Of a stretch of 64,000 bases of DNA, positions 6,781-64,000 are shown piece by piece. A program made the position numbers and the translations under genes. This DNA is from Selaginella moellendorffii. Its lineage: Eukaryota; Plantae; Lycopodiophyta. The stretch spans positions 186,001 through 250,000 of the forward strand of contig NW_003314309.1 of the NCBI RefSeq assembly GCF_000143415.4, read 5' to 3'. Numbering within the stretch: position 1 is the first letter of the stretch; the number at the start of each line of letters is the position of its first letter. The notes below the pieces were generated by a model. It saw nothing but the letters and a program-made list of their open reading frames with translations, did no database searches and was not told the origin of the DNA.

Positions 6781-6869
6781 CAAGAACCCTAAAAATTTGC
6801 TAGCAACATGGAAATCCAACCAAGGCCGTCGATTCAAGAATATCTGACGGTTGGAAATGAATCGGGGAC

Positions 6870-9544: not shown

Positions 9545-12500
9545 TGTGAGTGCTTGGAATATGGAAAGGGAATACAGAAAATGTGCATCTCAATTAGCCC
9601 AAATACCCTAGCTTATATACAAGAGCGAGTGGTCCAGATTGAAACCAATCCGACGGCTACTAAAATTCTACTACGCTAATATTAGTATACAGCATCGTAG
9701 CCATACACTTGGCCCTCACATCATCCCCTCCTCTCGGAATAATGGAAGACCATCAGGGTTCTCTTGTAGACGGGCCGGGATTGGGAGGAACGTTAGAAGG
9801 AGGCATACTTGCCGCAACACTCGATATAGTCCTTTCCACTGCGCAAGGAGCCCCTTAGATAAACCACATACCGTAAGATGGGGAAAACAGACTAACACCA
9901 AATCATCCACTTTGTACTCTGCAAGTGGACGATGATGGGAGTTATAGTGCCATTGTTGTCCCATTTGTACGTGGCCTAAGTGTGTGGCAAATTTAGCTCG
10001 GACAAGTGGAAGAATGCTCGTTAAATATTGATCCCACGACCAAGCATCGGCAGCTCATGGCAAGGTAAACCCAACTCCATTGGTAATATTGGATCATAAC
10101 CATATAAAAGTTTATATGGTGAAGCACCAATAGAACTCTGCACCCCCGTGACATATGCATACCGAAGAGACGGCAAATAACTATCCCAATCCGAATGCTG
10201 AAAGTTCATATACTTCGTAATCATCCTTTTGAATGTCTGAATGAGCCGTTCCACCAGACTGTCTAATTGTGGATGATAAGCACTTGTGAAAGTGTGGCGT
10301 ATCCCCAACCGAGACGTCAAAACATGAAATGCCTTAGCCACAAATGCGGGACCATTATCCGAAAGAATTTGCTTTGGACAAGAATGCTGGAACACCACTC
10401 GATTGAGGAGGAAGTATCCAACAGTAGTTGCAAAGGTGCTAGCAAGAGCACCAACTTCCACCCAACGAGTCAAGTAGTCAGAAACAATAATAACATACTC
10501 ATTGCTAACAATCGATTGTGGAAAGGTCTTATAAGATCAAATGCTACTAACTCAAATGGACGGGAAATTACAATTGACTCCAACCGTCCTTTGGCAACAC
10601 GAGGAGGAGTATTACGAGCTTGGCACCAAATGCAACTATGCACATATCGAATAATATCATGTCGCATCTCCGGCCAATAGAAAGACCTGTGCAGCTTCTT
10701 GGTTACACGACGATGTCCCATATGCCCACCTAGAATAGGAGAATCATGGTAGGCATGGAAAAACTGCGAAATAAAGACAGAAGACACCACCAGCCATAAA
10801 TGATTATCAAGATCCGTCCCCACAAAATAAAGAAGGCCGTCTCTTCAAGGCAATATTGAGAATGTAAATGCCAAAAAGGCAAATCATTAGCAAGTGATGC
10901 AGGATTCTCAAACCCATCTCGAATCTTTCGAATCCATGGCTCAATCTTTTGAGCATTGCAAACCTCATCAAGAGAAAGTAAATTTTGCTTTGCACCTTGT
11001 AGACATTGAACGTCAAGTATAACAACTGCCGATGGCAATGAATCCTCGTCTAAAAAATCCACAGATGTAGGAACAACAGGTTCGTCAAAAATATGAGAAG
11101 AGAGTGGAAAAGGAAGAGGAGTTCGAGAAAGGATATCAGCATTAGCCATAGAACTCCCTGGGTGATGAATAACATCAAAATCAGTTATTTGAAGCTTCAA
11201 AGCCCATCGAGCAATACGACCAACCAGGTTCTTCCACTTCAATAATGAAGTAATAGCAGCATGGTCACCTTCAAGTAACGTCCGAGAACTATGTAGATAT
11301 GCATGAAGTTTCTTGAAACCCCAGACTATTGCTAAATACTCCTTCTTTGTTGTGGAGTAGTTTATCTCCGCTGGTTGTAATGTACGGCTTATATATGCAA
11401 TGGGATGGTGCTGACTAGGCACATTCGAGCTCTCTTGCATCAATACACCTCCAAGACCAATGTCAAAAGCATCCACACGCAAAATAAAAGGTTGAGTGTA
11501 GTCAGGATATGCCAAAATCGGAAGAGTTGTTAATAGCTCTTTGAGATCCACGAACACCCACTCACAATTCGGAGACCAGATGAAAGATGACGCTGATGAC
11601 TTCAGCAACACTCGCAACAGTGCAATACAATCAGAAAGATGATCCACAAAACAACCAAGATACTGCACCTTGCCCAAGAAGCACTGCACATCATTCATAC
11701 ACTTCGGAGTAAGGAACTTTAGAATAGCCACAAGTTTGTCAGGATCAACTTGCAAACCCTTACGAAAAACACGGTACCCAAGATAAATTGTGTTTTTGGA
11801 CCCAAACACGCACTTCGACCGCTTCAGCTTTAAACCAACATCGCGTAGCCGATCCAACACTTTACAAACATCATGAATGTGCTCCTCCCACGTCCCCTCC
11901 AAATGGATCAAGACATCATCAATGAAGTCAGTAGTCACCTCTGGCATATCGCAAAGAACCTTGTCCGTTATCCGCTGAAAAGTTACTGAAGCATTGTTCA
12001 AACCAAATAGCATCACTAAGAACTTGTACAAACCAAATAGTATACAAAAAGTAGTCTTAGGAATATCTTCTTCGGCCATCGGTACTTGCCAGTACCCAGA
12101 AGTAAGATCTAGCTTGTTGAATCAACGACTTTGCCCCAAGCAATCCAAGAGATCAGTAGTGTGATGAAGAGGGTACACATCTAGGATCATCACTTTGTTT
12201 AACAAACGATACTCGATGTAGAAACGAATACTCCCATCAGACTTCGTCACAAAATGAGGTTCATATGCCCAAGGACTCCACGACTTCCGAATAACACCCT
12301 TTTCCAACATCTTTTTGACGTTTGCACGTAAAATCTTGATCTCCTTGGGTGACTGACAACAAACAAAAACCTTGATTCAATGAGCATCCTCGGTTGGAAT
12401 CGAATGACATGTGGCAATCTTAGCCTTAGATGATAGGTCAAATTCAAAGAGATCAGAATACTCCTTTATGAGCTGGTCAACTGCTGCAACACAAAGATTG

Positions 12501-14400
12501 TTGAAGGGATTGGAAAAGGGAAGAGCAGAATAAGACAGAAACATAAGAGGAAATAGTGGGGGAACAAAAGTAATGGAAGTAGAGGTAAAAGTAGAGAGAC
12601 AAAGAAGTATGGAAGTGAGAGGAATGGATGAAACATAAAGAAGTATGAGACAAGGGGGAGAAGCTTCAAAGTCACACTTAGCATGATTGCGCTGTAACCA
12701 ATCCATACTAAGAATGAGGTCAAAAGCTTGACTTGGCACCACCCGCAATGACTGCAACTCAAGCTCAAGATCGCCCACATACACAACCAGGTCTGCCTCA
12801 TCCCGTGCACATACATATGTACGACTGTTGCCATAAAGAATGAAAACTGGTTCCACCGCACGATGCAAGTGTAGATGGCAACGTGTGGCAACAGGTCGAA
12901 CAATAGAAGATAAACTTGAACCTGTATCAACCAACACAGAGAGAATAATAGGAGACCTCTTGTTATAAAAATGAGCTTGGAAAGCAAACACTGGATGAAC
13001 CGATACCAAGTGAACCCCTTGATGATACTCTCGAAAGAAAGATGGAGGGGTCAATAACTTATTTGTGCAAGGTCCTCTATTACTTGTGCGACTCCTCATT
13101 TCCCAAATGCATCTTGGTGTCCAAACCTTCCACTGTAGTAGCACCAACGGGATGTTGCTGACGCCAAAGTCTCCACCTAGGAAATGGAGGTCGCTAATCC
13201 GGAAAATGCTGACAACGCCGATAAGTATGACCAACTTCATCACACGCCCAGCAGCGAACATCACGGCCACAACTACGTCCTCGCCCTTGTCCTTGGACTC
13301 GAGTAGCAGTAGCATCAACCTCCATTGGAATATAACCATCACCCATAGGAAGTGGAGCTGAAGGATGTGTAACGAGAAGTGGAAGAGGCGACATCTCATA
13401 ACATTGTGCCAAGTGGAGAGCATCATCAAGGGTGGCAGGAGCAAGTGCATGCACAATTCTGACAAGATCTTAACGAAGTGCTGGCCATAACATTCCTAGT
13501 TTGATCCGCTCCGACATATTTGGCTCCACACGAAGCAAAAGACTTCGGAAATGAATGCCAAATTGCATCACTGACTCAGATGGCCTTTGGCGAAGATGAT
13601 GCAATTGTTGGAAGGCATCATCACAATCGTCGGCATGTCCAAAGGCGCATTTGAAGATGTCAAGGAGAACACTCCAATCCCCACAAGTGGCTTTGCTCAA
13701 ACCATTGTACCACTATAATGCTATCCCTTGAAAACACATGGGAAACTCACGCAAATGTTGAGCATCATCCCAAGAATGATATGTGGCAATCACCGTGAAG
13801 TGATTGAACCAAAGGTACATATCATCCCCAGGATTTCTGTGAAAGAACTCCGGCCGAACGTGAGGATTGGCACCAAGAGCAGGAGGAGTTGTACCATGTG
13901 TTGTGAACGCCACCATCAACTGAGTTTCGTTGTTTAATTGCAAATGCATAGCATCAAGCAATTGTACCAACTGCTGCTCCAGAGTCAAAAGAGGAGATTG
14001 TTGATTTGCCATGAAGATGAACGAAAAAGAAATAGCAAAAGAAGAGAAATGATAAAAAGCTAGAATGAAATGGTAGATCTAGACAATGCAAAAAGCTAAA
14101 TCTAAACTAAAATCATGAAAGGAAAGAATAAAAGAAAGGAAATGGAAAAAGCTAGATCTAGACGATGCAAAAGCTAAATCTAAACCAAAATCCTAAATCC
14201 AAACACTTCTTAGGGACAATCAAAGTTGCCCCTCATCTCCACCAATGTGAGTGCTTGGAATATGAAAAGGGAATACAAAAATTGTGCATATCAATTAGCC
14301 TAAAAACCATGGTTCGGATTGAAACCAATCCAATGGTTACCAAAATCCCATTACACTAATATTAGTATATGGCATCATAGCCATACACTTGGCCCTCACA
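9545..14400 (-). mobile_element. Full-length, frameshifted Ty3/gypsy LTR retrotransposon (non-chromovirus type)
   Basis: TG..CA LTRs at 9545-9720 and 14246-14400. PPT at 9721-9737. tRNA-Ala-like PBS at ~14229-14244. Gag with CX2CX4HX4C, protease VDTGS, RT FIDD, RNase H and integrase in gypsy order. 4-bp TSD TAGT; an empty site is present at ~56171-56183. Confidence 0.93.
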
Positions 14401-27448: not shown

Positions 27449-30278
27449 ATGGCCATGTCTCTCGCGGATTTGCTGCTGCCTTTGTTTCGTACTCGTCTTT
27501 CTCACAAGATCCCGGTCACAGTGCCCCACAAATCCATCTGCAATCGTGAACGACACACAGGTTCTTCTCTCTCTCCGTGACAGGCTTGGCATCAAAGTGT
27601 GGAACGAGACTGCCGATCCAAGAGCATGGCGGGGAGTGGAGTGGAGCTCGGACAACCAAGTGGAGGGCCTCGCTCTGTCCAGGTTTAATCTCTCGGGAGT
27701 TTTTCCTGCCACCTGGGCCGAGCTTCCATCGCTGGCTCGCCTGGACCTCTCGCAAAACGGCCTCTCCTCGCTGGAAGTCCCTTGCAAAAATACGCAGCTC
27801 AACCTCCTCAACTTGAGCTCCAATTCCCTGCAAGAGTTCCCCGGAAATCTCTCCAACCTCAAGAGTTTGGAAAGCCTGGACCTCAGTGGGAACTTCTTAA
27901 CAGTGGCCGGACTCCCAAAGTTTAGCTTGACGCTGCGATCGCTCAACCTGTCCATCAACAACTTAACTGGGAGCTTTTCCATTGGTGGTAACCTGGGACT
28001 GGAGGCACTGGAACTCTCGCAGAACGGACTCAGCGGCTCCATTCCAGAAACTTTCGGGGAGATGACGAACTTGAAGCGCCTGGACATATCGTATAACAGG
28101 TTTAGAGGAGATCTACCCGATATTTGGAGCAAGAACTTGGAGCTCAGGTACATGCGTATCTCCAACAATTCGCTCCATGGTGGTTTGCCACCGAGCTTGA
28201 GAAGGCTACGCAAGCTCTCTGTTTTACGCGCTGCATACAACTCTCTCTCCGGGCCACTGGAGCTGGAAGATGGCAACTTTGCAAGCATCGAGGTTTTGAA
28301 CCTCGGGCTAAACGGGTTTAGCGGAACGATCCCGGCTACGCTGGGAAGCTTGAGGAACTTGAAGATCCTGGTTCTCACGGGGAATCATTTTAGTGGCGCC
28401 ATACCACTGGAGCTTGGAAACTGGTCGAACATCAGAGAGATATGGCTTGACAGCAATAACTTGACTGGAACAATCCCAGGCGAGCTCTCGAAGCTCTCGC
28501 ATCTCCAGAAGCTGGTTCTCACGGGGAATCGTTTTAGTGGCGCCATACCGTCGGAGCTTGGAAACTGGTCGAACATCAGGGAGATATGGCTCAACAGCAA
28601 TAACTTGACTGGAACAATCCCAGGCGAGCTCTCGAAGCTCTCGCATCTCCAGAAGCTGGTTCTCACGGGGAATCGTTTTAGTGGCGCCATACCGTCGGAG
28701 CTTGGAAACTGGTCGAACATCAGGGAGATATGGCTCAACAGCAATAACTTGACTGGAACAATCCCAGGCGAGCTCTCGAAGCTCTCGCATCTCCAAAGGG
28801 TGGTTCTCACGGGGAATCGTTTTAGTGGCGCCATACCTCCGGAGCTTGGAAACTGGTCGAACATCAGGGAGATATGGCTCAACAGCAATAACTTGACTGG
28901 AACAATCCCAGGCGAGCTCTCGAAGCTCTCGCATCTCCAGAAGCTGGTTCTCACGGGGAATCGTTTTAGTGGCGCCATACCTCCAGAGCTTGGAAACTGG
29001 TCGAACATCAAAGAGATATGGCTCGATAGCAATAACTTGACTGGAACAATCCCAGGCGAGCTCTCGAAGCTCTCACATCTCCAGCAGCTGGTTCTCACGG
29101 GGAATCGTTTTAGTGGCGCCATCCCAGGCGAGCTCTCGAAGCTCTCGCATCTCCAAAGGGTGGTTCTCACGGGGAATCGTTTTAGTGGCGCCATACCTCC
29201 GGAGCTTGGAAACTGGTCAAACATCAGGGAGATATGGCTCAACGGCAATGATTTGACTGGAACAATCCCAGGCGAGCTCTCGAAGCTCTCACATCTCCAG
29301 CAGCTAGTTCTCAGCAGTAACGACATCGGTGGGGAGCTCCCTTCCGGACTCTCCAACTGCACTGAGCTCGTCGTTCTCTGGCTGGGGCAGAACAAGTTCT
29401 CTGGAAATCTCCCTGACAGCTTCGGGAATTTGAGCCGCCTGCTCCTTCTGTCGCTTTCCAGCAACGATCTTGTCGGTTCAATCCCGGCCATATTGCAAAA
29501 CATGTCGTCTCTGCAGTTCCTCTTCCTCTCAAACAACAGCTTCAGCGGCTCCATACCGGACTGGCTTCCCAGGCTCACGAACTTACGAGCCATGGACTTC
29601 TCGGTTAACAGGTTCTCTGGGGAGATGCCAGAAAGCATTGGCCGACTGTTTGCCAACGTCCAGCTTTACAACAAGAACAAACGGTCTGTGATGATTCAAA
29701 CCACGCGAGGACTCCTCTACAACGGCTTCGCCTTCCCGACCTCCATAGACTTCTCCTTCAACCAGCTGACTGGAAGCATTCCAGCTGCCATTGGCGACCT
29801 CTACAAGCTCCAGGTGCTGCACCTGAGCCACAACCAGCTAACAGGTCCCATTCCCGAGTCCCTGGGGAAGGCAAGGAATCTCTCCTGGGTGGGGCTCGCA
29901 AGCAATCGTCTCAATGGCTCCATACCATCGTCCGTGGCGGACCTCTCGTTTCTCACCATCTTCGACGTCTCCAACAACAGCCTGGTGGGACGGATACCTG
30001 ACAGCCCACAACTCTCGTCCATGGACGCGGCTCTCTTCGCTGGGAATCACCTCTGTGGCTTGCCACTGACCAACACCTGTTCGAGCACTGCTATGCCGCC
30101 ACATAAGCTTAGAACAGAGGGACAAGGTGGTAGCGAACAGGACCAAAGAGAGGTGATAGCACTTGTCAGCGTTGGCATCTTCGTGGCAGCCTTCTTCAAC
30201 GCGTTCTTCTGGACCTACTTTGCGGCAAACCGCAGAGCTCATTCCCAGCTCTGTGGATGCTGGCAATCAAATCTCTAG
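27449..30278 (+). CDS. LRR receptor-like protein, copy 2 (expanded LRRs; +1 frameshift in the signal peptide, so a probable pseudogene or a sequence error)
   Basis: The orthologous ATG is at 27449, with an extra G at 27489. The reading frame is open from 27546 to 30278. Confidence 0.85.
28368..29310 (+). repeat. Tandem array of 6.5 x 144-bp two-LRR modules
   Basis: LVLTGNRFSGAIPxELGNWSNIREIWLxSNNLTGTIPGELSKLSHLQx is repeated nearly identically. Confidence 0.93.
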
Positions 30279-37318: not shown

Positions 37319-40300
37319 CTAGAGCTTGTAGAGGAACGTCACCTTTTGTGCCACTTCTTGCCCGGAGCTTTTGTCAAGGTCTCCTTCCAGGCTCTCCACA
37401 AGATATGACATATGGTATGCTTGAACCTGGCTGGGAAAGAGCTTCACCACCTCCGTGACGTTCAAGTAGTGAGTATGAACCTCTTGGAGAAGGTGATGGA
37501 GCATCGCATACGCGATGGTGATGCCGTCGTGTGTGCTGGTTCCTCTTCCCAGCTCGTCGATGACTACCAGCGAGCGAGAAGTTGCCTTGTGGAGAATAGT
37601 TGAAGCTTCACTCAGCTCCTCGAAAAACGTACTGGAGCCCCTCTGGATTCTGTCCATCGCCCCTAAACACGGCATCGAATACATGCAGTTTGGCTGTCGC
37701 GGCTGGAACATACGATCCTATCTGCACGATAACAAAACATACGGAGTGAAAAGAAATAAAGATAGTTGCGAACCTGGGACATGATTGTGATTAGAGCAAC
37801 TTGACCGATGTAGCAACTTTTACCACCCATTTTTGGACCAGTGATTATTTGCGATCGTTCACCCTCACCAGAAACAACTGTGTCATTTGGTACAAATGCA
37901 TCTTGCAGAGTCGAATCTAGGACCTGCTCACGGAAAGACATTCCAGTAAAAATATTAAACGACAAGAGCAAAAGAAACAAACCGGATGTCGACCACCTTC
38001 TATCTTCAAAAGGCACGCTTCATCCACGAACTCCGGTCGAACATACCCCTGAAGCACATTTTTCATTCAGATAAGCGTTGAAAAACACAAGGAGACAGAC
38101 CTGATTGCACGAGACAACAGCAAGGGAATCAAGACAGTCGAGAGCTGCTAGTGCCTGTACTGCAGCCCGGAACTCCATGTGATAGGAGGTAAAGTCAGTC
38201 AGGAACATGTCCCATGCTTTGGCGCAAGATATATTTAATTGCTCCTTTGCAAGTGCCATTCTTTCCGATGCTTCCAAGACCTCCGGAGGATGATAGCGGT
38301 TTGCCTTTTTCGTACTGTTTATTTTAACCCAATCTGCAGGTACACGCTGCGCACATGGAACCTGAAACTACAAGCTTTTAGCAATCAAATAACTGAATTG
38401 AGAAAAAGAAAGTACCTCGACCAAAAACGACGTTCCCGAGACGCTCAAGTATTCCAGATTTGAACACTTCCAACAGTTTCCGATAACTGGGAAGAAAACT
38501 TTCGAGATCCTCCTCAATACTTTTTATGGTCTCTTTGCATTCGTCTACCTGAAGCACGACTTAAACGAAGTCTGGGAAACGATAACAAACCTCGGGATAC
38601 TGGCCGGCAACAAACAAGTTAATCTTATCCCCAGCTGCTGCTGCCTCTGCATTCAAACTTGTCACAAGCTTGTTTGCGTGATCTATCACTGAAGTTGAAG
38701 TCACTGCGGAGATTAGCCTGCTGAGGAGCGCAGACCTGGCGTCGCGAACCCGTTGAAACTGGGACGCTGCTTTCATAATCGCATTAATCACGTTAATGAA
38801 CTGCAGCAAACATTACGGTCAGAAAAGAATAACAATCAGGATTACAGAAAAGGAAAGGTACCTCATACGTTGTTGCTGTTTTGTGATAAATTCTTGTGAT
38901 ACCACGCTCAAGATCAGGCAATTTTCCCAGCAGCAACAACGTTGAAGCTAAAGTTGCAACTGTTGTGCCTCTGCCTTTATCTCCAATGGATTCGGCAATT
39001 TCCGCAACGGCGTCTAAACGTTGAGAAATAAGCATGCGGTCTCTTAACGGATGGGCCACCTGAAAATAGACATGAGTGGAAAAAACGAAAAATCCAAGAT
39101 TGTGACTGAGACCAAACTCCTTACCCAATACTTAAGCAGCCTCGCGCCAAAAGCAGTTTTTGTGTGGTTCATAAGCCAGAATAAAGATCCGTTTTCAGTA
39201 CCATCAGTTTGGTTATGTAGAATCTAGAAAGAAAAAACTTGTTACTGGTAAGTAAACATCGCATTCAGTGGTTACCTCAAGCTGGCGGATGGTGTTGGGC
39301 GAGAGCGTCATCTCTTGCTGCCCGGCAAATGGTCGGAAAAGAGCTCCTAAGCGCAATACATTTTCCAGATTAAACTGCTTCAGATAAGCAAATATATGCG
39401 CAAACGCAGCAACCACGATTTCTGGCATCGTCATCAACGCCTGCAAACTTCAATTCTCATCCGATAGTGTAATCAAGACAACTAGAAAATTACCTCTAAC
39501 CCTGCATCAACCTTCTCGTCCAGACAGCCTTTCTTAGAAGACGCCAAGCTCCCGTAGAAGTCCGCAAGAGCAGCAACAGTACCGCCATTTTCAAACGAGT
39601 TCTCAGGCGTCTTCTCGGCTCGAACATCCGCTGCGCCTGCATAGTCCATCAACAACTATACAAAAATCACCATCATTCATATACAACCCGATCAGAGAAA
39701 AGAAAACAGCTTACCTTCTTTGTAGAAGTGGACAAGGACGCAGATAAAAGAAGTTCTGCGGGAGCACACGCAAGCAACCGTGATTCCAGTTCCGTCCTGG
39801 TGACAGTGTCCATAAAGTGACCGTACATCACGTCTCCGGTCGAGGTTTCCACGGCCACCACCCCAAATCTAGCATCAAAACTTCCCTTCACTTCATCCTT
39901 TCCAGCGTTGGCCTTGTGCTCGGTGATTGCCTCCTCCACAACACACATGATATAGCTGCTAAGACGAATAGGTCCATCCCTTTCCCCACTCTCTTCTCCC
40001 CCAAGAAACTCGCCCGCCTCGAGCGTGGCCTTGGTATATAGCGCCGAGAGATCTCTCGAGAACGGGCCAGCCTTGTTCGTCCCGTGAGCTTTGATAGCCG
40101 CTGTCTCGGTCTGCTTGACAACGCCAACTTTGTAGCCAGCTTCCACAAGCCTTCTCACATGTACGTGCAACCGGAACGTTGGAACGCTGGCAGTGAGAAA
40201 GCTGTGGCTGTAGTAAGCAACGATTCCCAAAACATTGGCTGCTTTCTCCGCATCCTCTCCGAAAAATCGAAACTTGTATCCCACCTCGACCATGAGAAGG

Positions 40301-40710
40301 ATGTCAGGGAATTTCTTCTTGAGCTCCACAATCTGCTGCTCCAGAGGAGTAAGCTTCTCCTTCCCTGACGGTGGCTTTCCATAAAAGGAGGAATTTCCAC
40401 CACCGCCATCTCTGTCCCCCTCTCCAAGAAGAACATCTACAAACTTTCTACGCCTGTCTTTAATCGCTTCCCCCGATACTCCGCAATCGGCATCCTTCCC
40501 ATCGCCCAACCCGGCGTCTACATCTAAATTCAAGCACCGTTTCTTACTCGCGCTGGCCGCATTCTCGGCTGATCGCCTGAGATGATGCGGCGATGGCCAC
40601 ACTAGTGTGGGAGCCCGCAATGCATCGGTCTCACCTCGCTTGAAGAAGCTGGGGATGATCGCCTGGCCCTTGGCGGCGGCAGCGCCCTCGTCCTTCTTTC
40701 TCTTTCCCAT
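37319..40710 (-). pseudogene. MSH3: MutS homolog MSH3, multi-exon; 5' part looks intact, ATPase domain damaged and truncated
   Basis: LTPLEQQ..ILLMVEVGYKFRFFGEDA (MSH3-type), [27 protein letters not shown] and IDELGRGTST are present. There is a frameshifting deletion at the TRMGA motif, and the gene stops at VTFLYKL. Confidence 0.85.
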
Positions 40711-48544: not shown

Positions 48545-50869
48545 ATGGCCATGTCTCTCGCGGATTTGCTGCTGCCTTTGTTTCTACTCGTCTTTCTCAC
48601 AAGATCCCGGTCACAGTGCCCCACAAATCCATCCGCAATCGTGAACGACACACAGGTTCTTCTCTCTCTCCGTGACAGGCTTGGCATCAAAGTGTGGAAC
48701 GAGACTGCCAATCCAAGAGCATGGCGGGGAGTGGAGTGGAGCTCGGACAACCAAGTGGAGGGCCTCGCTCTGTCCAGGTTTAATCTCTCGGGAGTTTTTC
48801 CTGCCACCTGGGCCGAGCTTCCATCGCTGGCTCGCCTGGACCTCTCGCAAAACGGCCTCTCCTCGCTGGAAGTCCCTTGCAAAAATACGCAGCTCAACCT
48901 CCTCAACTTGAGCTCCAATTCCCTGCAAGAGTTCCCCGGAAATCTCTCCAGCCTCGAAAGTTTGGAAAGCCTGGACCTCAGTGGGAACAACTTAACAGTG
49001 GCCAGACTCCCAAAGTTTAGCTTGACCCTGCGATCGCTCAACCTGTCCATCAACAACTTAACTGGGAACTTTTCCATTGGTGGTAACCTGGGACTGGAGG
49101 CACTGGAACTCTCGCACAACGGACTCAGCGGCTCCATTCCAGAAACTTTCGGGGAGATGACGAACTTGACACGCCTGGACATATCGTACAACAGGTTTAG
49201 CGGAGATCTACCCAATATTTGGAGCAAGAACTTGGAGCTCAGGTACATGCGTATCTCCGAAAATTCGCTCCAGGGTGGTTTGCCACCGAGCTTGAGAAGG
49301 CTACGCAAGCTCTCGGAATTACGCGCTGCATACAACTCTCTCTCCGGGCCACTGGAGCTGGAAGATGGCGACTTTGCAAGCATCGAGGTTTTGCACCTCG
49401 GGCTAAACGGGTTTAGCGGAACGATCCCGGCTACGCTGGGAAACTTGAGGAACTTGAAGATCCTGGTTCTCATGGGGAATCGTTTTAGTGGCGCCATACC
49501 TCCGGAGCTTGGAAACTGGTCGAACATCAGAGAGATATGGCTCGACAGCAATAACTTGACTGGAACAATCCCAGGCGAGCTCTCGAAGCTCTCGCATCTC
49601 CAGAAGCTGGTTCTCAGGGGGAATCGTTTTAGTGGCGCCATACCTCCGGAGCTTGGAAACTGGTCGAACATCAGAGAGATATGTCTCGACAGCAATAACT
49701 TGACTGGAACAATCCCAGGCGAGCTCTCGAAGCTCTCGCATCTCCAAAGGGTGGTTCTCACGGGAAATCGTTTTAGTGGTGCCATACCTCCGGAGCTTGG
49801 AAACTGGTCGAACATTAGAGAGATATGGCTCGACAGCAATAACTTGACTGGAACAATCCCAGGCGAGCTCTCGAAGCTCTCGCATCTCCAGCAGCTAGAT
49901 CTCAGCAGCAACGACATCGGCGGGGAGCTCCCTTCCGGACTCTCCAACTGCACCGAGCTCGTCCTTCTCGGGCTGGACCAGAACAAGTTCTCTGGAAATC
50001 TCCCTGACAGCTTCGGGAATTTGAGCCGCCTGCTCCTTCTGTCGCTTTCCAGCAACGATCTTGTCGGTTCAATCCCAGCCATATTGCAAAACATGTCGTC
50101 TCTGCAGTTCCTCTTCCTCGACAACAACAGCTTCAGCGGCTCCATACCGGACTGGCTTCCCAGGCTCACGAACTTACGAGCCATGAACTTCTCGGTTAAC
50201 AGGTTCTCTGGGGAGATGCCAGAAAGCATTGGCCGACTGTTTGCCAACGTCCAGCTTTACGACCAGAACAAACGGTCTGTGATGATTCAAACCGAGCGAG
50301 GACTCGTCTACAACGGTTTCACCTTCCCGACCTACATAGACTTCTCCTTCAACCAGCTGACTGGAAGCATTCCAGCTGCCATTGGCGACCTCTACAAGCT
50401 CCAGGGGTTGTACCTGAGCCACAACCAGCTAACAGGTCCCATTCCCGAGTCCCTGGGGAAGGCAAGGAATCTCTCCTGGGTGGGGCTCGCAAGCAATCGT
50501 CTCAATGGCTCCATACCATCGTCCGTGGCGGACCTCTCGTTTGTCACCATCTTCGACGTCTCCAACAACAACCTGGTGGGACGGATACCTGACAGCCCAC
50601 AACTCTCGTCCATGGACGCGGCTCTCTTCGCTGGGAATCAGCTCTGTGGCTTGCCACTGACCAACACCTGTTCGAGCACTGCTATGCCGCCACACAAGCT
50701 TAGAACAGAGGGACAAGGTGGTAGCGAACAGGACCAAAGAGAGGTGACAACACTTGTCAGCGTTGCCATCTTCGTGGCAGCCGCCTTCAACGCGTTCTTC
50801 TGGACCTATTTTGCGGCAAACCGCAGAGCTCATTCCCAGCTCTGTGGATGCTGGCAATCAAATCTCTAG
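48545..50869 (+). CDS. LRR receptor-like protein, copy 3 (774 aa)
   Basis: Same architecture as copy 1, with three two-LRR modules and an intact ORF. Confidence 0.92.
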   Translation: MAMSLADLLLPLFLLVFLTRSRSQCPTNPSAIVNDTQVLLSLRDRLGIKVWNETANPRAWRGVEWSSDNQVEGLALSRFNLSGVFPATWAELPSLARLDLSQNGLSSLEVPCKNTQLNLLNLSSNSLQEFPGNLSSLESLESLDLSGNNLTVARLPKFSLTLRSLNLSINNLTGNFSIGGNLGLEALELSHNGLSGSIPETFGEMTNLTRLDISYNRFSGDLPNIWSKNLELRYMRISENSLQGGLPPSLRRLRKLSELRAAYNSLSGPLELEDGDFASIEVLHLGLNGFSGTIPATLGNLRNLKILVLMGNRFSGAIPPELGNWSNIREIWLDSNNLTGTIPGELSKLSHLQKLVLRGNRFSGAIPPELGNWSNIREICLDSNNLTGTIPGELSKLSHLQRVVLTGNRFSGAIPPELGNWSNIREIWLDSNNLTGTIPGELSKLSHLQQLDLSSNDIGGELPSGLSNCTELVLLGLDQNKFSGNLPDSFGNLSRLLLLSLSSNDLVGSIPAILQNMSSLQFLFLDNNSFSGSIPDWLPRLTNLRAMNFSVNRFSGEMPESIGRLFANVQLYDQNKRSVMIQTERGLVYNGFTFPTYIDFSFNQLTGSIPAAIGDLYKLQGLYLSHNQLTGPIPESLGKARNLSWVGLASNRLNGSIPSSVADLSFVTIFDVSNNNLVGRIPDSPQLSSMDAALFAGNQLCGLPLTNTCSSTAMPPHKLRTEGQGGSEQDQREVTTLVSVAIFVAAAFNAFFWTYFAANRRAHSQLCGCWQSNL

Positions 50870-54659: not shown

Positions 54660-55449
54660 TTTTTAGGAATGGCTTGTTTTGATGTTTAAAGGGATGATTG
54701 CAAAACACATGAACTTTCAGCATTTAGATTGAGATGGATATTTGCCATTTCTTTGGTATACATATATCACAGGGTATAAAGTTCTATTAATGCTTCACTA
54801 TATAAACTTTTATATAGTCATTATTTAGAGTTGAGTTTACCTTTGTGATTGTCATAAGGTGCCGATGCTTAAGTCTTGGGATCAATATTTGATAAGCATT
54901 CTTCCACTCATTCGAGTAAAGTTTATTGAGCATTTAGGCTGTGTATAAGTGAGATAATAACAACACAACAACTTCCATCATCGTTCACCAGTGGAGTACA
55001 AAGTGGATGACTTGGTGTTAATCCATTTTCCCAATGTGTGCCAAATGAGCAAACTTAAACACTTTCTATAAATAGCATTTGGGACCGAAATGAGACTAAC
55101 ACAAAGGGCATGATGGCGAGGGTGTTTGGCAAACATGATAAATTATCATTTAGTGAATATTGAGGGAGCAAGCTCAATATTACAGGGGTTTTTAATATTA
55201 GCAAGTGCAAGCTAATGACAAGAGTTTCTCAAACTAGGCCGAGTATACTCAGCAAGAAATACATGGGGTTCCTACTTTATGTTTATCTAATTTAAATATA
55301 TGGTCATTGACCAGTTTCTCAATTAGTACAAGAGGGATTGATAAAAGGTCTAGCAAAACCAACCTCCTACTATTATGGTAGTAGAGAAAGAATATCTGAA
55401 AGGACTAACTAACAAATAACTTTAGATACCCAAAATCACATTCACAACA
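54660..55449. mobile_element. Gypsy integrase fragment (54660-55035) fused to a fragment of the 22842-24180 LTR (55036-55449)
   Basis: Homology to 8680-9050, and to 23560-24180 without the 5S-containing insertion. Confidence 0.7.
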
Positions 55450-56530
55450 CAATTTCTCCTTTCCTCTATTCTTTTTCTTCTAAGGCTTGGGCTTCTTCCC
55501 ATCAATCTTCTTGTAGATTCAATGCTGCCCATCTGGCTCCCCACAGCCCCTTGAGATGTGCACAGAGATCCACCCCCTGCACATTGAAGTAATTGTGCCT
55601 AAATATGATGGATCTACCATCGGGCCACATGGGTGACCATGTGAGATTGATGTTCATCCATGCCAAGTGGAAATCATGCCTAGCATCCACTTCAATTAAA
55701 TCTGCTGGGATCCCTAGCTTGCACAGCTTGTAGAACTATGTGTTGATGGAGAATGACACTGGCATAATGTTGTCACTGGCATAATGTTGTCATTGGCATT
55801 GGAGAAGGCCATATTTTGCAAGAACTGGTTGAAGAGAATCACATTGCTGTGCACCTAGAAAAATTAGAAGTTGATATGGCTCTTTGTTTTACTGTAAATA
55901 AGGAACCATATTAACTTATAGTTTTTCTAAGTTCAGCAAAATATATAGCAAAAGGTAATTATATTTGAAGGTTTTTAAGCATGTAAATTATACTTCTATT
56001 GAATTCTTTTTTATAAAGAAAATTTTAAATAATATGTACTTATTTTTATTATATTTAAATGGGATTTTTGATAATTCATACAAAGCTAAACCTTAATTCA
56101 CATTGATGTTAATCAAACAATGGTACTTAAGTAATCTAGTTTAACAAAATTTAATTAATTTATACACTGTCATTAGTGTAACTAAAAACTACTTGTCTCA
56201 AAAAAAAATACCTGTTCTTTATTTTTGTCTTTAAGTATCTAAAGTGACACTTTGAGGAGTAGTGACTTATGCCGTGTAGCCTCCTAGATATCAAGAATAT
56301 TTAAGATCCTATGATATTCTATTACATAGTGTAAGAAAGAATAGGGACTGAGAGAGCACAAGATAAGGACATGAATCTGCTCGTTGAGAGCTCTCACCAC
56401 CTTTCTGAATTATTAAAAATAGCAGATTAAGATTCTTTACCTAATCAGACATCCATTACAAACCATGGTCAGCACTCAGACTCAGAGTGTATGGAGCGAA
56501 TATACTTGATGGGCCGCCCTAATCACGCGA

Positions 56531-57952
56531 ATGGCGAGGTCCGTGCTCGTGATAAACTCTGGCAGCTCATCGATCAAGTGAGTAAAGATTTTTGTGAAGA
56601 AAGAGTTCCTCTAGAGGGTCAATGTATCGCAGGTATGCCCTGTATCATCTGGGAAGAGTGGCTTCTTGCATTTTCCAGGGCAGTGTGGAAGGCATTGGAA
56701 CTTCCAAGAGCTCCATCTCCCACAAGAGCATCTCCACTGCCCAAGATCTAAAAATCATGGTATTTGTGTTCCAGCAATCTTAAAGCCTTTGTACATGGAT
56801 AGCTGGGTTGCTAATAGTTTTTTGGTTTTCTTCCAGGGAAAATGTATTGGAGACCACGAAGCTGGTCTCAAGAAAGTGATGGATTTGCTCCAGCAGCCAC
56901 AAAACGTTTGCGCTGTTGGGCACCGAGTCGTTCACGGCGGCGAGCAATTTAGCAAACCAACGCATATAACTCAAGAGGTGAAGAAAGCAATCGAGAGGGC
57001 TGTTCCTCTAGCTCCACTTCACAATCCAGCAAACTTGGAGGTAACAAATCTTAACTTTCTTTTTTCCAAAAGGAAAAATCCATTTTTTTGTCTCTCTTAA
57101 AAAGATCACAAAATTTTCCAGGGAATTCGAGTTGCTGAGGAGCTCTTCCACTGCCCCCACGTAGCCGTCTTTGACACAGCCTTCCACTCCACCATCCCCC
57201 GGCCGTCGTACACGTACGGAATCCCCTGGAAGCTGTACGAAGAGCTGGGCGTACGGCGCTATGGCTTCCACGGGACGAGCTACCAGTTTCTTCTTGGCGA
57301 GGCTTCTCGCGCCCTTGGAAGGCCAGCGCTGGAACTTAATCTCATCGCCTTCCATCTCGGCGCTGGAGCGAGCATGTGTGCGATCAAGCACGGGCAATCG
57401 ATCGACACAAGCATGGGAATGACTCCACTCGAAGGTTTAGTGATGGCTACTCGGAGTGGCGACGTTGATCCGGCGATCTGGCCCTTCCTCGCAGCGCACA
57501 GATCCATGGGCTTGGCCGAGATCGATGCTTTGCTCAACAAGGAGAGTGGGATCTACGGGCTTTGCGGAGACAAAGATATGAAAGAAGTTGTGCAAGCCGC
57601 GGATAGTTCCGACAAGCACAGGCTAGCGCTGGAGGTGTACGTCCACCGTATAAGGAAGTATCTGGGAGCGTACATGGTTGATCTCGAGGGGAAAGTTGAC
57701 GCGCTGGTGTTTAGCGGTGGCGTTGGCGAGAGGTCGGCTAAAATCCGGTCCATGGTTTGCGAGAGGCTGGAGGCTTTTGGAATCCAGGTTGACGAGGAGA
57801 AAAATGGTAAAAGCTTGAGAGAGATCCACAAGGATGGTTCGAGGATCAAGGTTTTGGTGATACCGACCGACGAGCAGCTTTGTATTGCGCAGCAAACTCG
57901 CGAGGTTTTGGAGAGTTTGGAAGCTCCGGTTCGTGAGAAGAGTGGGGGATAG
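56531..57952 (+). CDS. ackA: Acetate kinase, 402 aa, exons 56531-56577, 56633-56759, 56837-57040, 57122-57952
   Basis: The spliced ORF is in frame and has [78 protein letters not shown] and VIPTDE. Confidence 0.93.
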
Positions 57953-58259
57953 GATTCACTAGAAAACTTGGATGATCTTGGTTGTAAATAGAATGGATTG
58001 ATCGAGGTTATAAGAGAACAAAAGTTATCGCTACATGGTCTTTTAAGTAAAACTACTGAAAGCCATACACCTCTACTATAGCTTGATCTCTTCGCTTCGA
58101 ATCGCAATCATCGACGAATTGGCAAGGAGAGCGCTGGATTCTTTGATCTTCTCGAGCATCACATCAGCTGCAAGAACCAAGTTGATAAGTATTTGACGAC
58201 AAGTTTATGACGTGAGACTGATAGACAGGACTTACACATGATTTGTCTTAGCTGAGTTA

Positions 58260-60224
58260 TCACCATCTGTATAGATCACAAGAACACGGTTGAGATAAAG
58301 CAAAGCGATGAACAAATGCCACTTACGGATTTCCAGGAGGGCCTTGTTGTTGTTGTTGCTGCTGCGGCTGCTGCTGTGCCGGATTGTAGCCTCCAGGATT
58401 GCTTCCTCCGCCTGGGTTGTATCCATTGTTGTTCCCAGTGTTATATCCGCTTCCCGGATTAAAACCTCCACCTCCGGCACCCGAGGAAGGATTGCTAAAA
58501 CCTCCCTGGCTTGGATTGTTAAATCCTCCTGGACTGCTTCCTGGACCACCACTATTGCTTCCCGGATTGTTGAAGCCTCCCGTACTATTGCCTGGACCAC
58601 CACTGTTGCTTCCAGACGGAGTGTTGAATCCTCCTGGACTATTTCCTGGACCACCACTGTTGCTTCCCGGATTGTTGAATCCTCCGGGATTGTTACCCCC
58701 GGAGCTAAATCCAGTCGAAGAGTTTCCAGCACCAAACCCGCCAGGATTACTTCCATAGCCTCCACCCGCATTTCCTCCTGGACTAGGAGACCACCCCGGA
58801 TTTCTACCTTGTGCACTAAAACCACCTGGACCGTTTCCGGGATTCGAGCCAGGACCCGAGTTGAATCCCCCTGGACCGCTCCCAGGATTGGAGTTGAATC
58901 CGCCAGGAGCGCTTCCGGCATTTGGATTAAATCCTGGATTGTAGCTGCCACCTCCTGGAGCTGGACTTCCAGCATTCATCGCTCCAGCCGGTGCTGCTCC
59001 AACAGCCGCTCCCACTGGTGCTCCAACCGGCGCTCCAAACGGAGATCCACCGGGTGGAGGATTCACCGGAGGCAGCGGCTTAACATTTGGATTCGGCCAA
59101 GTTCTTCTGCTAGCTCGACTCCCACCAGCAAACTCGGGACCAACCGGAGGTCCCTTGTAGTTTGGATTCGGCCAGACTTTGCCACCTTTCTTCCCAATGC
59201 CTGCGAACTCCGGACCGACTGGGGGACCCTTGTAGTTTGGATTCGGCCATACTTTCCCCTTGGGAGTCTCGTAGATCGGTGGAGGACCTTTGTAGTTTGG
59301 ATTCGGCCATGTCTTGCCACTGCCTTTGCCACCGCCGCCCCAGACGTACTTTGGATCGTCACCCTTGTAGTTTGGGTTCGGCCACACTTTTCCAGTCCCT
59401 CCTTTGCCAGTGCCGCTCACGAAAGGCTTGTCCCCGGGCTTTGGCTTGTAGTTTGGATTCGGCCACACTTTTCCACTGCCTTTGGTGAAGGTCACAAAGT
59501 TGTCCTTGCCATCTTCCGGGGGCTTGTAGTTTGGATTCGGCCAAGTTTTCCCACTGCCATACTTGCTGAAAGACGAGCCTCCAGTCGACCACACGTAGTT
59601 GTCACCAGGCTTGGGCTTATAGTTTGGATTGGGCCAAACTTTCCCGACTCCTTTGCCACCTTTGAAAGATCCACAGCCAAATGGCTCGTCCGAGACTTTG
59701 TACTCGGGATCCATGAGAGGATGAGGCCAGCCATCCCCGTCCCTGTAAATCTTCTGGTTTGGATCGATTCCACCACCAGTGTTCTCGGTCTTTGCCGCTC
59801 CATCGGTGCCTGCTGGAGATGGAACTACATCTACCACAGCGCTGGAAGCTGGCGTGGTAGAGCCAAAAAGCCCACCGGGACCCCATAGACTGGAAGAGCT
59901 GGAGTTTCCACCGCTGCTAGTGCTGCTATTGCTGGAACTCTCCCACGGCAATGCGCTCGGGGACGAGGAGGAGCTAGAAGAAGGATTCCATGAGCTCCCA
60001 AGATCACTGCCAGATGCGGCCTCCGGTGCCCTGAGCAGCCGAAATCGCGTCCTGGAGAGCTCTCCTCCAGGCCCTAATCGCTGGACCCTAAGACCGCTGC
60101 TGCTGGAATGCCGCGAGAGGAGATCCCTGTCGACGCCATTGCCGATTCCAGCCGCGGGCGCTGAAGAAGAGGAGGACGATCGCGCTAGCGGCGGCAGCGG
60201 CACGCTCACTACCTGCGCCGCCAT
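58260..60224 (-). CDS. Uncharacterised Gly/Pro/Asn-rich repeat protein with a plastid-transit-peptide-like N-terminus (~634 aa; probable intron 58267-58326)
   Basis: Long GC-rich ORF. ATG at 60224 (MAAQVV) or 60239. Eight K[VT]WPNPNYK-type repeats, GGFNNPG repeats and a polyQ tract. The ORF stop lies inside a GTAAGT donor; splicing gives ...GNPW*. Confidence 0.8.
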
Positions 60225-61140
60225 AGCACTCACCAGCATTCCTTGCGCATCCACACAGCTCCCACGAAGAAAAATCCCTCTAGGGTTTTGGATAAGGGTT
60301 TAACAAGAAAAATATCTAAAAGCAGTATATTCGTGTAGTGTTAGAGGATATTCTAATTGGAGCATATATTCTTTAAAGGGACCAGAGTGAGCTTAAAATA
60401 ATGCATACTAAAAAACAAATTAATATATTTCTTGAAGTACGTTTTTGAAGTAAATTCAATATATATAAAAATTATGAATTGCAAACCTTGTTAGAACTAA
60501 AAAATGAAAAGAATTAAATAGATAAAAACAATAAAAACACCTTTATTTACTTTCTTCATCTTTACCTTTAATAAAATTTTATTATAATTTTATTAATTTA
60601 TAATCTTTTAAATATTTCTTAATTTATATGGAAAAATTAAGAACTCATCTATTAGAATTATGTATAATTTTAGATACTATTTATTTATTATTTGGATTTT
60701 TCTTTTTATTGTTATTTTTTTAAGTAAAAATATTTATGAATGTTCATCTAAAGATTGGGAAACATCTTTTCTCTTTAAATAATAAAAAAATTTATGTATA
60801 AAAACATTTACATCTTTTCTATACTTATCATAATAAATTTCTAAGCAACAAAGCATTATTTCCCATACTACAAGCAGACTTAGCCTTGTTATCAATGGGT
60901 TTGTCCCTTTTCACTTGACTCCCCCAAGTACTTGCTTGTTAATGATCCAAATCATATTTTAAAAACTATATTTTTTTAATAAATAATGATAAATATCAAC
61001 TTATAGCTTTTCCCAATTCAGCAAAATATATAACAAATGATGATTATGGATGGCAGAACTGGTCATTTAAAGGTTGCTTTCAACATATAAATCATAATAT
61101 TATAAATCATCATGTCAATAGAATATAAAACATATATATA

Positions 61141-64000
61141 TGTGAGTGCTTGGAATATGGAAAGGGAATACAGAAAATGTGCATATCAATTAGCCCAAAA
61201 ACCCTAGCTTATATATAGAAGCGAGTGGTCCGGATTGAAACCAATCCGACGGCTACCAAAATCCCACTACGCTAATGTTAGTATACGGCATTGTAGGTGT
61301 ACACTTGGCCCTCACATCATCCCCTCCTCTCGGAATAATGGTAAACCATCAGGGTTCTCTTGTAGACGGGCTGGGATTTGGAGGAACGTCAGGAGGAGGC
61401 ATCGGCGGATCTGTAGGTGGTATTAACTGCTTCTGATCCCTTTGTATAAAGCGTTTCAACCGTTGCACATGCATAATCTCTGGAGGCTCGGCTTGCTGGA
61501 TGTCATGCCAAACCTCATAAACTTGTGGTCCAACTTGCCGCAAAACCCGATATGGTCCTTTCCACTGTGCAAGGAGCCCCTTAGATAAACCACGTACCGT
61601 AAGATGGGGAAAACGAATTAATACCAAATCATCCACTTTGTACTCTGCAGGTGGACGATGATGGGAGTTGTAGTGCCGTTGTTGTCCCACTTGTACGCGG
61701 CCTAAGTGTTCGGCAGACTCTGCTCGGACAAGTGGAAAAATGCTTGTCAAATATTGATCCCATGACTTAGCATTCGCAACTTGTGGCAATCGCAAAGGTA
61801 AACCCAGCTCCATTGGTAATATTGGATCATGACCATATAAGAGTTTATATGGTGAAGCACCAACAGAACTCTGCACCCCAGTGACATATGCATACCGAAG
61901 AGACGGCAAATAACCATCCCAATCTGAATGCTGAAAATTCACATACTTCACAATCATCCCCTTGAACGTCCAAACGAGCCGTTCCACCAGACCATCTGAT
62001 TGTGGATGATAAGCACTCGTGAAAGTGTGGCGAATCCCCAACCGAGACGTCAAAACATGAAATGCCTCAGCCATAAATGTGGGCCATTATCTGAAAGAAT
62101 CCGCTCTAGACAAGAATGCTTGAACACCACTCGATTGAGGAGGAAGTATCCAACAGCAGTTGTAGAGGCGCTAGCAAGAGCACCAACTTCCACCCAACGA
62201 GTCAAATAGTCAGAAGCAATAATAATATACTCATTGCCAACAGTCGACCGTGGAAAAGGTCCCATAAGATCAAACGCCACCAACTCAAACGAATAGGAAA
62301 CTGCAATTGACTCCAACTGTCCTTCCGCAGCCTGAGGGGGAGTATTACGAGCTTGGCACCAAACGCAGCTACGCACATACCGGATAATATCACGTCGCAT
62401 CTCCGGCCAATAGAAAGATCTGTGTAGCTTCTCAATTACATGACGATGTCCCATATGCTCACCTAGAATAGGAGAATCATGGTAGGCATGGAGAAACTGC
62501 AGAATAAAGATAGAAGGCACCACCAGACGTAAATGATCATCAGGATCTGTCCCCACAAAATAAAGAAGGCCACCTTCAAGATGATATTGAGAATGTAAAT
62601 GCCGGAAAGGCAAGTCATCAGCAAGTGATGCAAGATTCTTAAACCCATCTCGAAGCCTTCGAATCCATAGCTCAATCTTTTGAGCCTCGTGAACCTCATC
62701 AAGCGAAGGTAGATCTTGCTCTGCACCTTGTGGACACTTAACGTCAAGTACAGCAACTGCCGACGGCACAGAATCCTCGTCTAGAAAATCCACAGATGCT
62801 GGAACAACAGGCTCGTCAGAAACATGAGAAGAGAGTGAAGAAGGAAAAGGAGCTCGAGAAAGGGCATCAGCATCAGCCATAGAACTCCCTGGACGATGAA
62901 CAACATCAAAATCATATATCTGAAGCTTTAAAGCCCACCGAGCAGTACGACCAACTAGGTTCTTCCGCTTTAATAACGAAGTAACAGCAGCATGGTCACC
63001 TTCAAGTAATGTCTGAGAACCATGTAGATATGCATGAAGTTTCTCGAAACACCAGACTGCTACTAAACACTCCTTCTTTGTCATGGAGTAGTTCATCTCC
63101 ACTGGTTATAATGTACGGCTTATATATGCAATGGGATGGCGCTGACTAGGCACACACTCAAACTCTCTTGCATTAACACACCTCTAAGACCAATGTCAGA
63201 AGCATCCACGTGCAAAATAAAAGGTCGAGTGTAGTCAGGATATGCCAAAACTGGAGGAGTCGTCAATACCTCTTTGAGATCCCCGAACGCCCACTCACAA
63301 TCCGGAGACCAGATGAAAGATGATGTTGATGACTTCAGCAACGCTCGCAACAGTGCAGTGTGATCAGAAAGATGATCCACAAAACGATCGAGATACTGCA
63401 CCTTGCCCAAGAAACGCTGCACATCATTAACACACTTCGGAGTAGGGAAATTTAGAACAGCCACAAGTTTGTTAAGATCAACTTGCAAACCCTCACGAGA
63501 AATACGGTACCCAAGATAAGTTGTATCTTTAGACCCAAACACGCACTTCGACCGCTTTAGCTTCAAACCAACATTGCGTAGCCGATCCAACACTTTACAA
63601 ACATCACAAATGTGCTCCTCCCACGTCCCCTCTGAGCGGATCAAGACATCATCAATGAAGTCAGCAATCACCTCCAGCATATCACAAAGAACCTCGTCCA
63701 TCATCCGTTGGAAAGTTGCTAGAGCATTGTTCAAGCCAAATGGCATCACCAAGAATTCGTACAAACCAAATGGTGTACGAAAAGCAGTCTTAGGAAATTC
63801 TTCTTTGGCCATCGGTACTTGCCAGTACTTAGAAGCAAGATCTAGCTTGGTGAACCAACGACTTCGCCCCAGACGATCCAAGAGATCAGCAGTGTGAGGA
63901 AGAGGGTACACATCTGGGATCATCACTTCGTTTAATAGACGATAGTCAATGCAGAAACGAATACTCCCATCAGGCTTCGTCACAAGATGAGGTTCACATG
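61141..64000 (-). mobile_element. Second copy of the short-LTR Ty3/gypsy family (3' LTR 61141-61316, integrase, RNase H, RT; runs off the window)
   Basis: The 176-bp LTR matches 9545-9720. PPT present. Pol is in three frames (61349-62074, 62050-63102, 63120-63983). Confidence 0.93.

Follow-up and report, generated by a model that had tools for sequence, protein, structure and literature searches.

A WPNPNYK-repeat gene of Selaginella moellendorffii encodes a basic low-complexity protein, a candidate multivalent scaffold

The lycophyte Selaginella moellendorffii carries a gene for a WPNPNYK-repeat protein that is a real nuclear gene, transcribed and spliced, and that is unannotated in the public protein sets searched. 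It lies on the minus strand of a 64,000-nucleotide (nt) stretch of contig NW_003314309.1 (assembly GCF_000143415.4, positions 186,001 to 250,000); this whole stretch is referred to as the window, and positions are given within it unless another scaffold is named. The product contains an array of short units built around an aromatic motif, in which motif and spacer are both under purifying selection, and the 21-nt cores that encode the motif are conserved beyond what the protein needs. We tentatively interpret the product as a multivalent scaffold or condensate-forming protein, probably of an organelle.

Gene structure and expression

Public RNA data support expression of the gene. Across 20 runs from seven studies, 78-86% of the sampled words of the query stretch 58100-60400 are present; exons make up 89% of that stretch. 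RNA contigs from four runs, representing four studies and two organism labels, were placed on 56000-61500. Because the GT..AG introns of a neighboring acetate-kinase gene are missing from them, these contigs can be identified as RNA. In these runs the contigs cover 60276-58327 without a break and leave the AT-rich flanks uncovered, and in all four they join 58327 to 58266 and 58236 to 58167, across intervals that begin and end CT..AC on the plus strand, that is, GT..AG on the minus strand. The original prediction had named the lack of a transcript as a reason to abandon it; transcription and splicing are observed in four runs of four studies. Four variants distinguish the runs, of which two are silent, one replaces Ser with Asn in the tail and one replaces Pro with Ser in the Ser-rich region. 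The 31-mers of a polyglutamine (polyQ) tract form a depth spike in run coverage.

Splicing changes the end of the predicted product. The minus-strand open reading frame (ORF) at 58323-60254 translates as the original prediction had described, and the TAA at 58323-58325 that closes it is not a real stop: the spliced message continues to an end of ...GPPGNPW and a TGA at 58260-58262, in agreement with the left-hand limit originally proposed for the gene. At the other end, translation may begin at either of two in-frame ATGs, 60239 (MLVSAM...) or 60224 (MAAQ...), the first of which adds the residues MLVSA, and the product is 639 or 634 residues long depending on which is used. A six-codon upstream ORF (MRKECW; minus strand 60230-60250, with its ATG at 60250 and its stop codon ending at 60230) overlaps ATG 60239 and stops 6 nt ahead of ATG 60224. 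Because of this overlap, and because ATG 60224 lies in a good context, better than that of 60239, it may well be the start actually used; translation from it gives the Ser/Arg/Ala-rich N-terminus beginning with MA that had been described. Residues are numbered here from ATG 60239.

A conserved aromatic motif in an array of short units

The central part of the protein consists of nine units, whose motifs comprise seven exact copies of K[V/T]WPNPNYK, one RTWPNPNVK and one degenerate version, GWPHPLMDPEYK; the minus-strand translation reproduces the originally predicted array in full. At the DNA level, the 21-nt motif sequence occurs seven times at up to three mismatches, compared to 0.00 expected occurrences in 100 shuffles. 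Measured from one motif to the next, each unit comprises 20-31 residues, and they follow the consensus GK[VT]WPNPNYK[PG]xPxxx[FYW][VA]..G.KG[ST], with a second aromatic position occupied in seven of the nine.

Comparison of units 7 and 8 provides direct evidence of selection. The two units encode an identical run of 20 residues and differ by 10 synonymous and 0 non-synonymous changes, which indicates that the duplication is old and that the spacer, too, is under purifying selection. The original prediction had proposed a sticker-and-spacer design in which an invariant motif is separated by freely varying spacers. The invariant Trp/Tyr motif stands and is under selection, but the spacers are not free, given the narrow range of unit lengths, the second aromatic position and the preserved residues of units 7 and 8. 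With an array of GK[VT]WPNPNYK units in a protein predicted to be disordered, the product would define and fit a WPNPNYK-repeat family.

A plus-strand ORF at 58308-59888 (526 residues), which runs codon-aligned antisense to the gene and reads LVVWIRP at every motif, was considered as a coding sequence and rejected, since the introns are GT..AG on the minus strand and it is only the minus frame that makes the 10 changes between units 7 and 8 silent. Its freedom from stops is explained by how rarely the sense frame uses the Leu codons TTA and CTA and the Ser codon TCA.

Composition and predicted structure of the protein

The repeat array is embedded in a protein that is basic overall (isoelectric point, pI, 9.6-9.8) and that changes composition abruptly between modules (Table 1). 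Residues 1-75 contain 12% Arg, 13% Leu, 19% Ser and 13% Ala, lack Lys entirely, have a pI of 11.9 and show their first acidic residue at position 37. Beyond residue 75, Arg and Leu almost vanish and Lys appears for the first time, a sharp switch on the basis of which the N-terminal 75 residues plausibly resemble a cleavable organellar presequence, either a transit peptide or a mitochondrial one. The segment RFRLLRAPEAA would, we presume, suit a stromal or mitochondrial processing site. The same N-terminus looks weak as a signal peptide, because its highest mean hydropathies (Kyte-Doolittle) are only 1.73 over 9 residues and 1.79 over 15 residues (residues 1-15). The 19-residue maximum is 1.54, and the hydropathy scan finds no membrane-grade hydrophobic segment in the protein.

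An acidic poly-Ser linker separates this module from the repeat region, which is Lys-based (K+R 34), has a pI of 9.8 and contains 19% Pro and 18% Gly. The last 244 residues form an uncharged tail of 32% Gly, 15% Asn, 16% Pro and 14% Ser with a single charged residue. Here the predicted Gly-rich GGF repeats and polyQ tract are both present, as about 10 GGF(N/S)-type repeats and the sequence QQQPQQQQQQQ; Phe or Tyr recurs about every 13 residues, and there are three [GS]YNP motifs. The tail had been called prion-like; it is too rich in Pro (16%, alongside 32% Gly) to be classed as a classic prion-like domain. Its composition appears closer to elastomeric or phenylalanine-glycine (FG)-like low complexity.

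Structure prediction with AlphaFold2 returned a mean predicted local distance difference test (pLDDT) score of 35 for the whole protein and 50.5 for a two-unit piece modeled with an alignment of the units, the latter without secondary structure; no helix of four or more residues was predicted in either. These low scores are consistent with disorder, with the caveat that the alignments are shallow. The models were also meant to reveal any arrangement of the units as beta-hairpins or a solenoid, and neither contains confident structure.

Frozen 21-nt motif cores

The DNA encoding the motif is more conserved than its translation requires. Across the seven exact copies, the 21-nt core TGGCCGAATCCAAACTACAAG has a mean identity of 95%, compared to 46% for the 30 nt before it and 34% for the 30 nt after it. 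Where units 7 and 8 encode the same residue, 10 of 13 codons outside the core differ; of the degenerate codons within the core, 0 of 6 do (Fisher p = 0.003). Codon choice within the motif is also specific to position. Counted over nine copies, which include a fragment on another scaffold, the first motif Asn is AAT in eight and the second is AAC in eight (p = 0.003), and the second motif Pro is CCA in all nine, while Pro codons are evenly used in the rest of the gene. The synonymous sites of the core are thus frozen while those of its flanks are saturated.

Several explanations were considered. General codon bias does not account for a choice of codons that depends on position, and saturated flanks are at odds with a recent duplication. 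Tracts left by gene conversion would probably exceed 21 nt. Rfam searches of 55000-62000 yielded no match in the gene, and folding of the repeat-region RNA revealed no excess structure (z = 0.58).

Relatives

Database searches place the protein in no characterised family, an assignment that the original prediction had named as counting against it. Pfam gave no family at E values up to 1, the ESM Atlas gave no usable match for either the whole protein or the repeat region, and the best hit among solved structures, the expansin-like domain of a grass pollen allergen, is not significant (E 0.68). Together with the HMMER and AlphaFold2 results, these searches agree with the earlier impression that the protein contains no recognised folded domain. 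Two larger searches were a word-index search of 5.8 billion proteins with the repeat region and an exhaustive HMMER search of 1.84 billion representatives. Both returned one match only, a one-motif fragment in SELMODRAFT_424337, which is a chimeric-looking gene model of 483 residues on scaffold GL377631.1 (L001 11618-12268). This model holds one intact unit, GGSSFSKYGSGKTWPNPNYK, followed, by eye, by the frame-shifted remnant of a second. Its alignment with the window copy is 72% identical at the DNA level with the motif retained, and 7 of the 10 codons ahead of the motif differ between the two, all seven silently.

Searched alone, the tail matches only P0122, a truncated paralog. This 227-residue model adjoins a second acetate-kinase copy on scaffold GL377716.1 (L002 9974-12361), in a segmental duplicate that is 92% identical to the window and whose homology ends at window position 58881. 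The duplicate takes in the acetate-kinase gene but no more than the final ~185 codons of the WPNPNYK gene, which carry a frameshift, and the ratio of non-synonymous to synonymous substitution rates (dN/dS) of P0122 is 0.49 over 67 alignable codons. P0122 carries the NCBI name 'uncharacterized transmembrane protein DDB_G0289901-like', a name that rests on low-complexity likeness.

The product of the gene itself is missing from the protein sets searched, including by look-up of the exact product, and is carried by public RNA assemblies. Since the searches missed even this product, absence from other lycophytes cannot be inferred from them, and the family has so far been seen only in S. moellendorffii. 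A degenerate DNA pattern for the motif matched 46 metagenome contigs, once each and never as an array, which is about the number expected by chance in a rough estimate from the information content of the pattern. Neither the peptide nor 15-mers of the 21-nt core occur in any paper found in the literature search.

Proposed function and alternatives

A spliced and widely represented mRNA, selection on motif and spacer, and a basic low-complexity product with no predicted fold together lead us to favor, tentatively, a multivalent scaffold or condensate-forming protein. The WPNPNYK peptides would serve as short linear binding motifs with the pattern [aromatic]-x-N-P-x-Y, in which a tight turn is favored. 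Eight Trp/Tyr pairs would thereby be on offer, either for a multimeric partner or for contacts among the peptides themselves. Self-association could come in addition from the uncharged tail with its aromatic residues, so that motifs and tail together would constitute a multivalent scaffold. On composition, the protein is probably organellar, with the plastid likelier than the mitochondrion. Disorder in vivo, multivalent binding, condensation and targeting are all properties that we infer.

Several considerations weigh against this interpretation. Since the motif is conserved at the nucleotide level, some of the constraint may bear on RNA or DNA and not on the protein. Low pLDDT values obtained from a single sequence or a five-row alignment are weak evidence for disorder, and the hairpin-like pattern of the units (aromatic-V...GxGK-V/T-W) could allow them to fold on a partner or as a solenoid. 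Disordered Ser-rich N-termini are often mistaken for transit peptides. Finally, relatives in other lycophytes may merely be missing from sequence sets that miss this gene as well.

The properties of the protein also invite other explanations. Selaginella accumulates silica, and the repeats recall proline-rich proteins of the PPVYK type, the mussel decapeptide and Siliplant1. A structural protein secreted to the wall or extracellular matrix, combining Pro- and Gly-rich types and with Tyr-Lys motifs for oxidative cross-linking or adhesion and an elastomeric PGGF-rich tail, would suit the Pro, Gly and Lys content of the repeats (19% Pro, 18% Gly), their YK and KPKP sequences, and the GPGGF/PGGF units and AP/SP dipeptides of the tail; by analogy with silaffins and Siliplant1, Lys/Pro repeats beside an acidic poly-Ser block could even template silica. 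We nonetheless judge secretion unlikely: the N-terminal hydrophobic core is weak (9-residue maximum 1.73) and interrupted by Gln and Ser, the ~55 Arg/Ser-rich residues that follow it are superfluous for a signal peptide, SP3-5, PPVYK and GGX arrays are absent, and Pfam finds no wall-protein family. Ranked next, and likewise unlikely, is an untargeted cytosolic or nuclear protein, such as a component of RNA granules or of another condensate, whose N-terminus is merely disordered. Low complexity throughout, the polyQ tract and aromatic residues in an uncharged Gly/Asn/Ser context, as in FUS-like or FG-like domains, agree with it, whereas the switch near residue 75, before which Arg stands at 12% and Leu at 13% and after which both almost disappear and Lys sets in, speaks against it, and Pfam detects no RNA-binding or other domain. 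A transcribed ORF of recent origin without a selected product might be suspected from an orphan, unannotated and repetitive sequence amid AT-rich DNA and retrotransposons. This is scarcely credible given the silent changes of units 7 and 8 (10 synonymous, 0 non-synonymous), a motif that is invariant in seven copies and in the fragment elsewhere, a spliced mRNA present in seven studies, and a truncated duplicate that, with its dN/dS of 0.49 over 67 codons, is not simply drifting.

The frozen cores raise a possibility that is compatible with any reading of the protein, namely that the eight 21-nt cores are bound by a small RNA of 21 nt or by an RNA-binding protein, or that their codons are selected for translation kinetics. 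It would explain why the synonymous sites of the core are fixed (0 of 6 codons changed, against 10 of 13 in the flanks) and why Asn and Pro codons are position-specific, and the conserved block is exactly 21 nt long. We regard it as improbable: there is no Rfam match in the gene and no excess RNA structure (z = 0.58), the core sequence appears in no paper found, the strong representation of the gene in RNA speaks against strong silencing, and gene conversion in short tracts, seeded by the one homology that is shared, is a possible alternative cause. More speculative still, and a long shot, is a combination of levels, in which a family of plastid condensate scaffolds confined to lycophytes, in a land plant that lacks pyrenoids, would keep its eight WPNPNYK stickers constant both as protein and as a 21-nt RNA element, which might for instance be targeted by a small RNA that sets the dose of the scaffold. 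The original prediction had drawn an analogy with Rubisco linkers, under which Rubisco would be condensed in a pyrenoid-like matrix by WPNPNYK stickers bound to RbcS or RbcL. The general architecture, basic disordered repeats with a Trp-centered motif, is shared, and the K-x-W-P of the motif and the three [GS]YNP sequences of the tail can be set beside the KWSP and GTGYNP stickers of PYCO1 (PMC10288592). However, such short-motif likeness is at chance level for low-complexity sequence. The protein has no sequence relation to any linker, its motif is neither the helix of EPYC1, of which the predictions contain no trace, nor the KWSP of PYCO1, and its motifs are spaced 20-31 residues apart versus about 50 residues in EPYC1 and CsLinker (PMC13655443). 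Among land plants, only hornworts are known to build pyrenoids, and they use RbcS-STAR (PMC13655443). The analogy is therefore unsupported, and a role as Rubisco linker very improbable.

Significance

S. moellendorffii is the reference lycophyte genome, yet a well-expressed gene is missing from the protein sets searched and is therefore invisible to proteomic and comparative work based on them. An invariant aromatic motif that occurs eight times in a basic chain predicted to be disordered offers a clean natural case in which multivalency and phase behavior are easily testable. The most surprising point is the frozen synonymous sites of the 21-nt cores beside saturated neighbors, an unusual signature; should the cores be read by a small RNA or an RNA-binding protein, one repeated element would be selected on two levels. 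The gene opens no route to Rubisco condensation in vascular plants.

Genomic neighborhood

The window consists of gene islands of ~53% GC amid AT-rich DNA. The plus-strand neighbor of the WPNPNYK gene is identified by its last exon (57122-57949), which matches the S. moellendorffii acetate kinase SELMODRAFT_92330 at 100% identity over 276 residues, with next best matches of at most 69%. The best relatives of this enzyme come from bryophytes, lycophytes, ferns, gymnosperms and streptophyte algae, with no angiosperm among the 120 best matches. The two genes are convergent. Exon 3 of the WPNPNYK gene abuts or overlaps the 3' end of the acetate-kinase gene, and the RNA contigs of two runs (X3 and X8) pass from one gene into the other through the 3' ends, so that the genes are a possible cis-antisense pair. 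On the other side, a Ty3/gypsy-type retrotransposon piece lies directly upstream of the AT-rich promoter region of the WPNPNYK gene. An AT-rich palindromic hairpin at 55853-55932 gives weak matches to microRNA precursors in Rfam on both strands, far below gathering scores, and these are probably due to chance. Other features of the window are listed with those of the gene in Table 1.

Table 1. Features of the WPNPNYK-repeat gene, its product and the surrounding window (UTR, untranslated region; LRR, leucine-rich repeat; PPR, pentatricopeptide repeat)
Feature	Positions	Strand	Evidence or remarks
5' UTR, to limit of RNA contigs	60240..60276	-	Contig ends 60263-60276; adapter-tagged end 60270
Coding exon 1	58327..60239	-	ORF, translation, contigs of four runs
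Intron 1, 60 nt, GT..AG	58267..58326	-	Joint 58327/58266 in 4 of 4 runs
Exon 2, 31 nt: completes Pro codon, Trp, TGA 58260-58262, remainder 3' UTR	58236..58266	-	Spliced contigs
Intron 2, 68 nt, within 3' UTR	58168..58235	-	Joint 58236/58167 in 4 of 4 runs
Exon 3, 3' UTR, minimum extent	57977..58167	-	X1 contig piece 57977-58167
Presequence-like N-terminal module, residues 1-75	60015..60239	-	Composition
Acidic poly-Ser linker, residues 76-165; S 31%, pI 4.05, three Trp	59745..60014	-	Composition
Basic repeat region, residues 166-395, nine units	59055..59744	-	Translation, composition
Degenerate first motif WPHPLMDPEYK	59697..59729	-	Translation
WPNPNYK copy 1, core with two synonymous changes	59616..59636	-	DNA motif scan
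WPNPNYK copy 2, consensus core	59523..59543	-	DNA motif scan
WPNPNYK copy 3, consensus core	59445..59465	-	DNA motif scan
WPNPNYK copy 4, one synonymous change	59364..59384	-	DNA motif scan
WPNPNYK copy 5, one synonymous change	59289..59309	-	DNA motif scan
WPNPNYK copy 6, consensus core	59229..59249	-	DNA motif scan
WPNPNYK copy 7, consensus core	59154..59174	-	DNA motif scan
Variant motif WPNPNVK	59079..59099	-	Translation
Uncharged G/N/P/S tail (residues 396-639), exon 1 part, residues 396-638	58327..59054	-	Translation, composition
PolyQ tract QQQPQQQQQQQ	58344-58376	-	Translation
Acetate kinase gene SELMODRAFT_92330	56555-57952	+	Introns 56759-56835, 57039-57119
Three related LRR genes, ~20-25 kb apart, with long antisense ORFs	2868-5009, 27546-30278, 48545-50869	+	Strong LRR_1/LRR_8 Pfam matches
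Ty3/gypsy-type retrotransposon pieces (reverse transcriptase, RNase H, integrase)	10730-13465, 61349-63983	-	
ORF with MutS domains I and II	39673-40710	-	Probably exon of an ordinary nuclear gene
PPR-repeat ORF	5839-6975	-	Probably exon of an ordinary nuclear gene

Comparison with known systems

Wall proline-rich proteins (PRPs, PPVYK-type), glycine-rich proteins (GRPs, GGX-type) and the mussel foot protein with its decapeptide are Pro/Tyr/Lys- or Gly-rich repeat proteins. The Selaginella protein resembles them in its short Pro/Tyr/Lys repeats followed by Gly-rich low complexity, and in how basic the repeats are. Unlike PRPs, GRPs and extensins, it lacks a clear signal peptide, arrays of PPVYK, SPPPP or GGX and any Pfam match, and Trp and Asn, which are central to its motif, are unusual in wall proteins. 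A second likeness, in form only, is to FxNPxY, a sorting or phosphotyrosine-binding (PTB) domain-binding motif in the tails of receptors of the low-density lipoprotein (LDL)-receptor type, which adopts a tight turn in known examples. WPNPNY shares the form [aromatic]-x-N-P-x-Y. However, FxNPxY motifs occur as single copies in the cytosolic tails of membrane receptors, whereas the Selaginella protein has eight copies and no membrane segment (19-residue maximum 1.54).

Among the Rubisco linkers, the nearest in style is PYCO1, the pyrenoid linker of the diatom Phaeodactylum tricornutum, a basic protein (pI about 10) of mostly disordered tandem repeats with a predicted transit peptide (PMC10288592). 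Its stickers are a Trp motif, KWSP(R/Q), and a Tyr motif, GTGYNP, in repeats of ~80 residues with a low-complexity, prion-like composition (PMC10288592). The Selaginella protein is likewise basic (pI 9.6-9.8); its mean pLDDT is 35 and, to judge from composition, it may have a transit peptide. It differs in that KWSP is absent, Trp and Tyr share one 7-residue motif, [GS]YNP occurs only three times, in the tail, and the units are 20-31 residues long as against ~80; homology between the two is not detectable, and no pyrenoid is known from Selaginella. The green-algal linkers EPYC1 and CsLinker place short alpha-helical stickers ~50 residues apart in a disordered protein (PMC13655443). With these the Selaginella protein would share the sticker-and-spacer logic, in which a short motif recurs unchanged several times along a disordered, basic chain; its motif is Pro/Asn-rich and turn-prone, with no helix predicted, and its spacing is half as long. 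In kind, the WPNPNYK-repeat protein, predicted to be disordered, belongs to the sticker-and-spacer type; in sequence, it is new.

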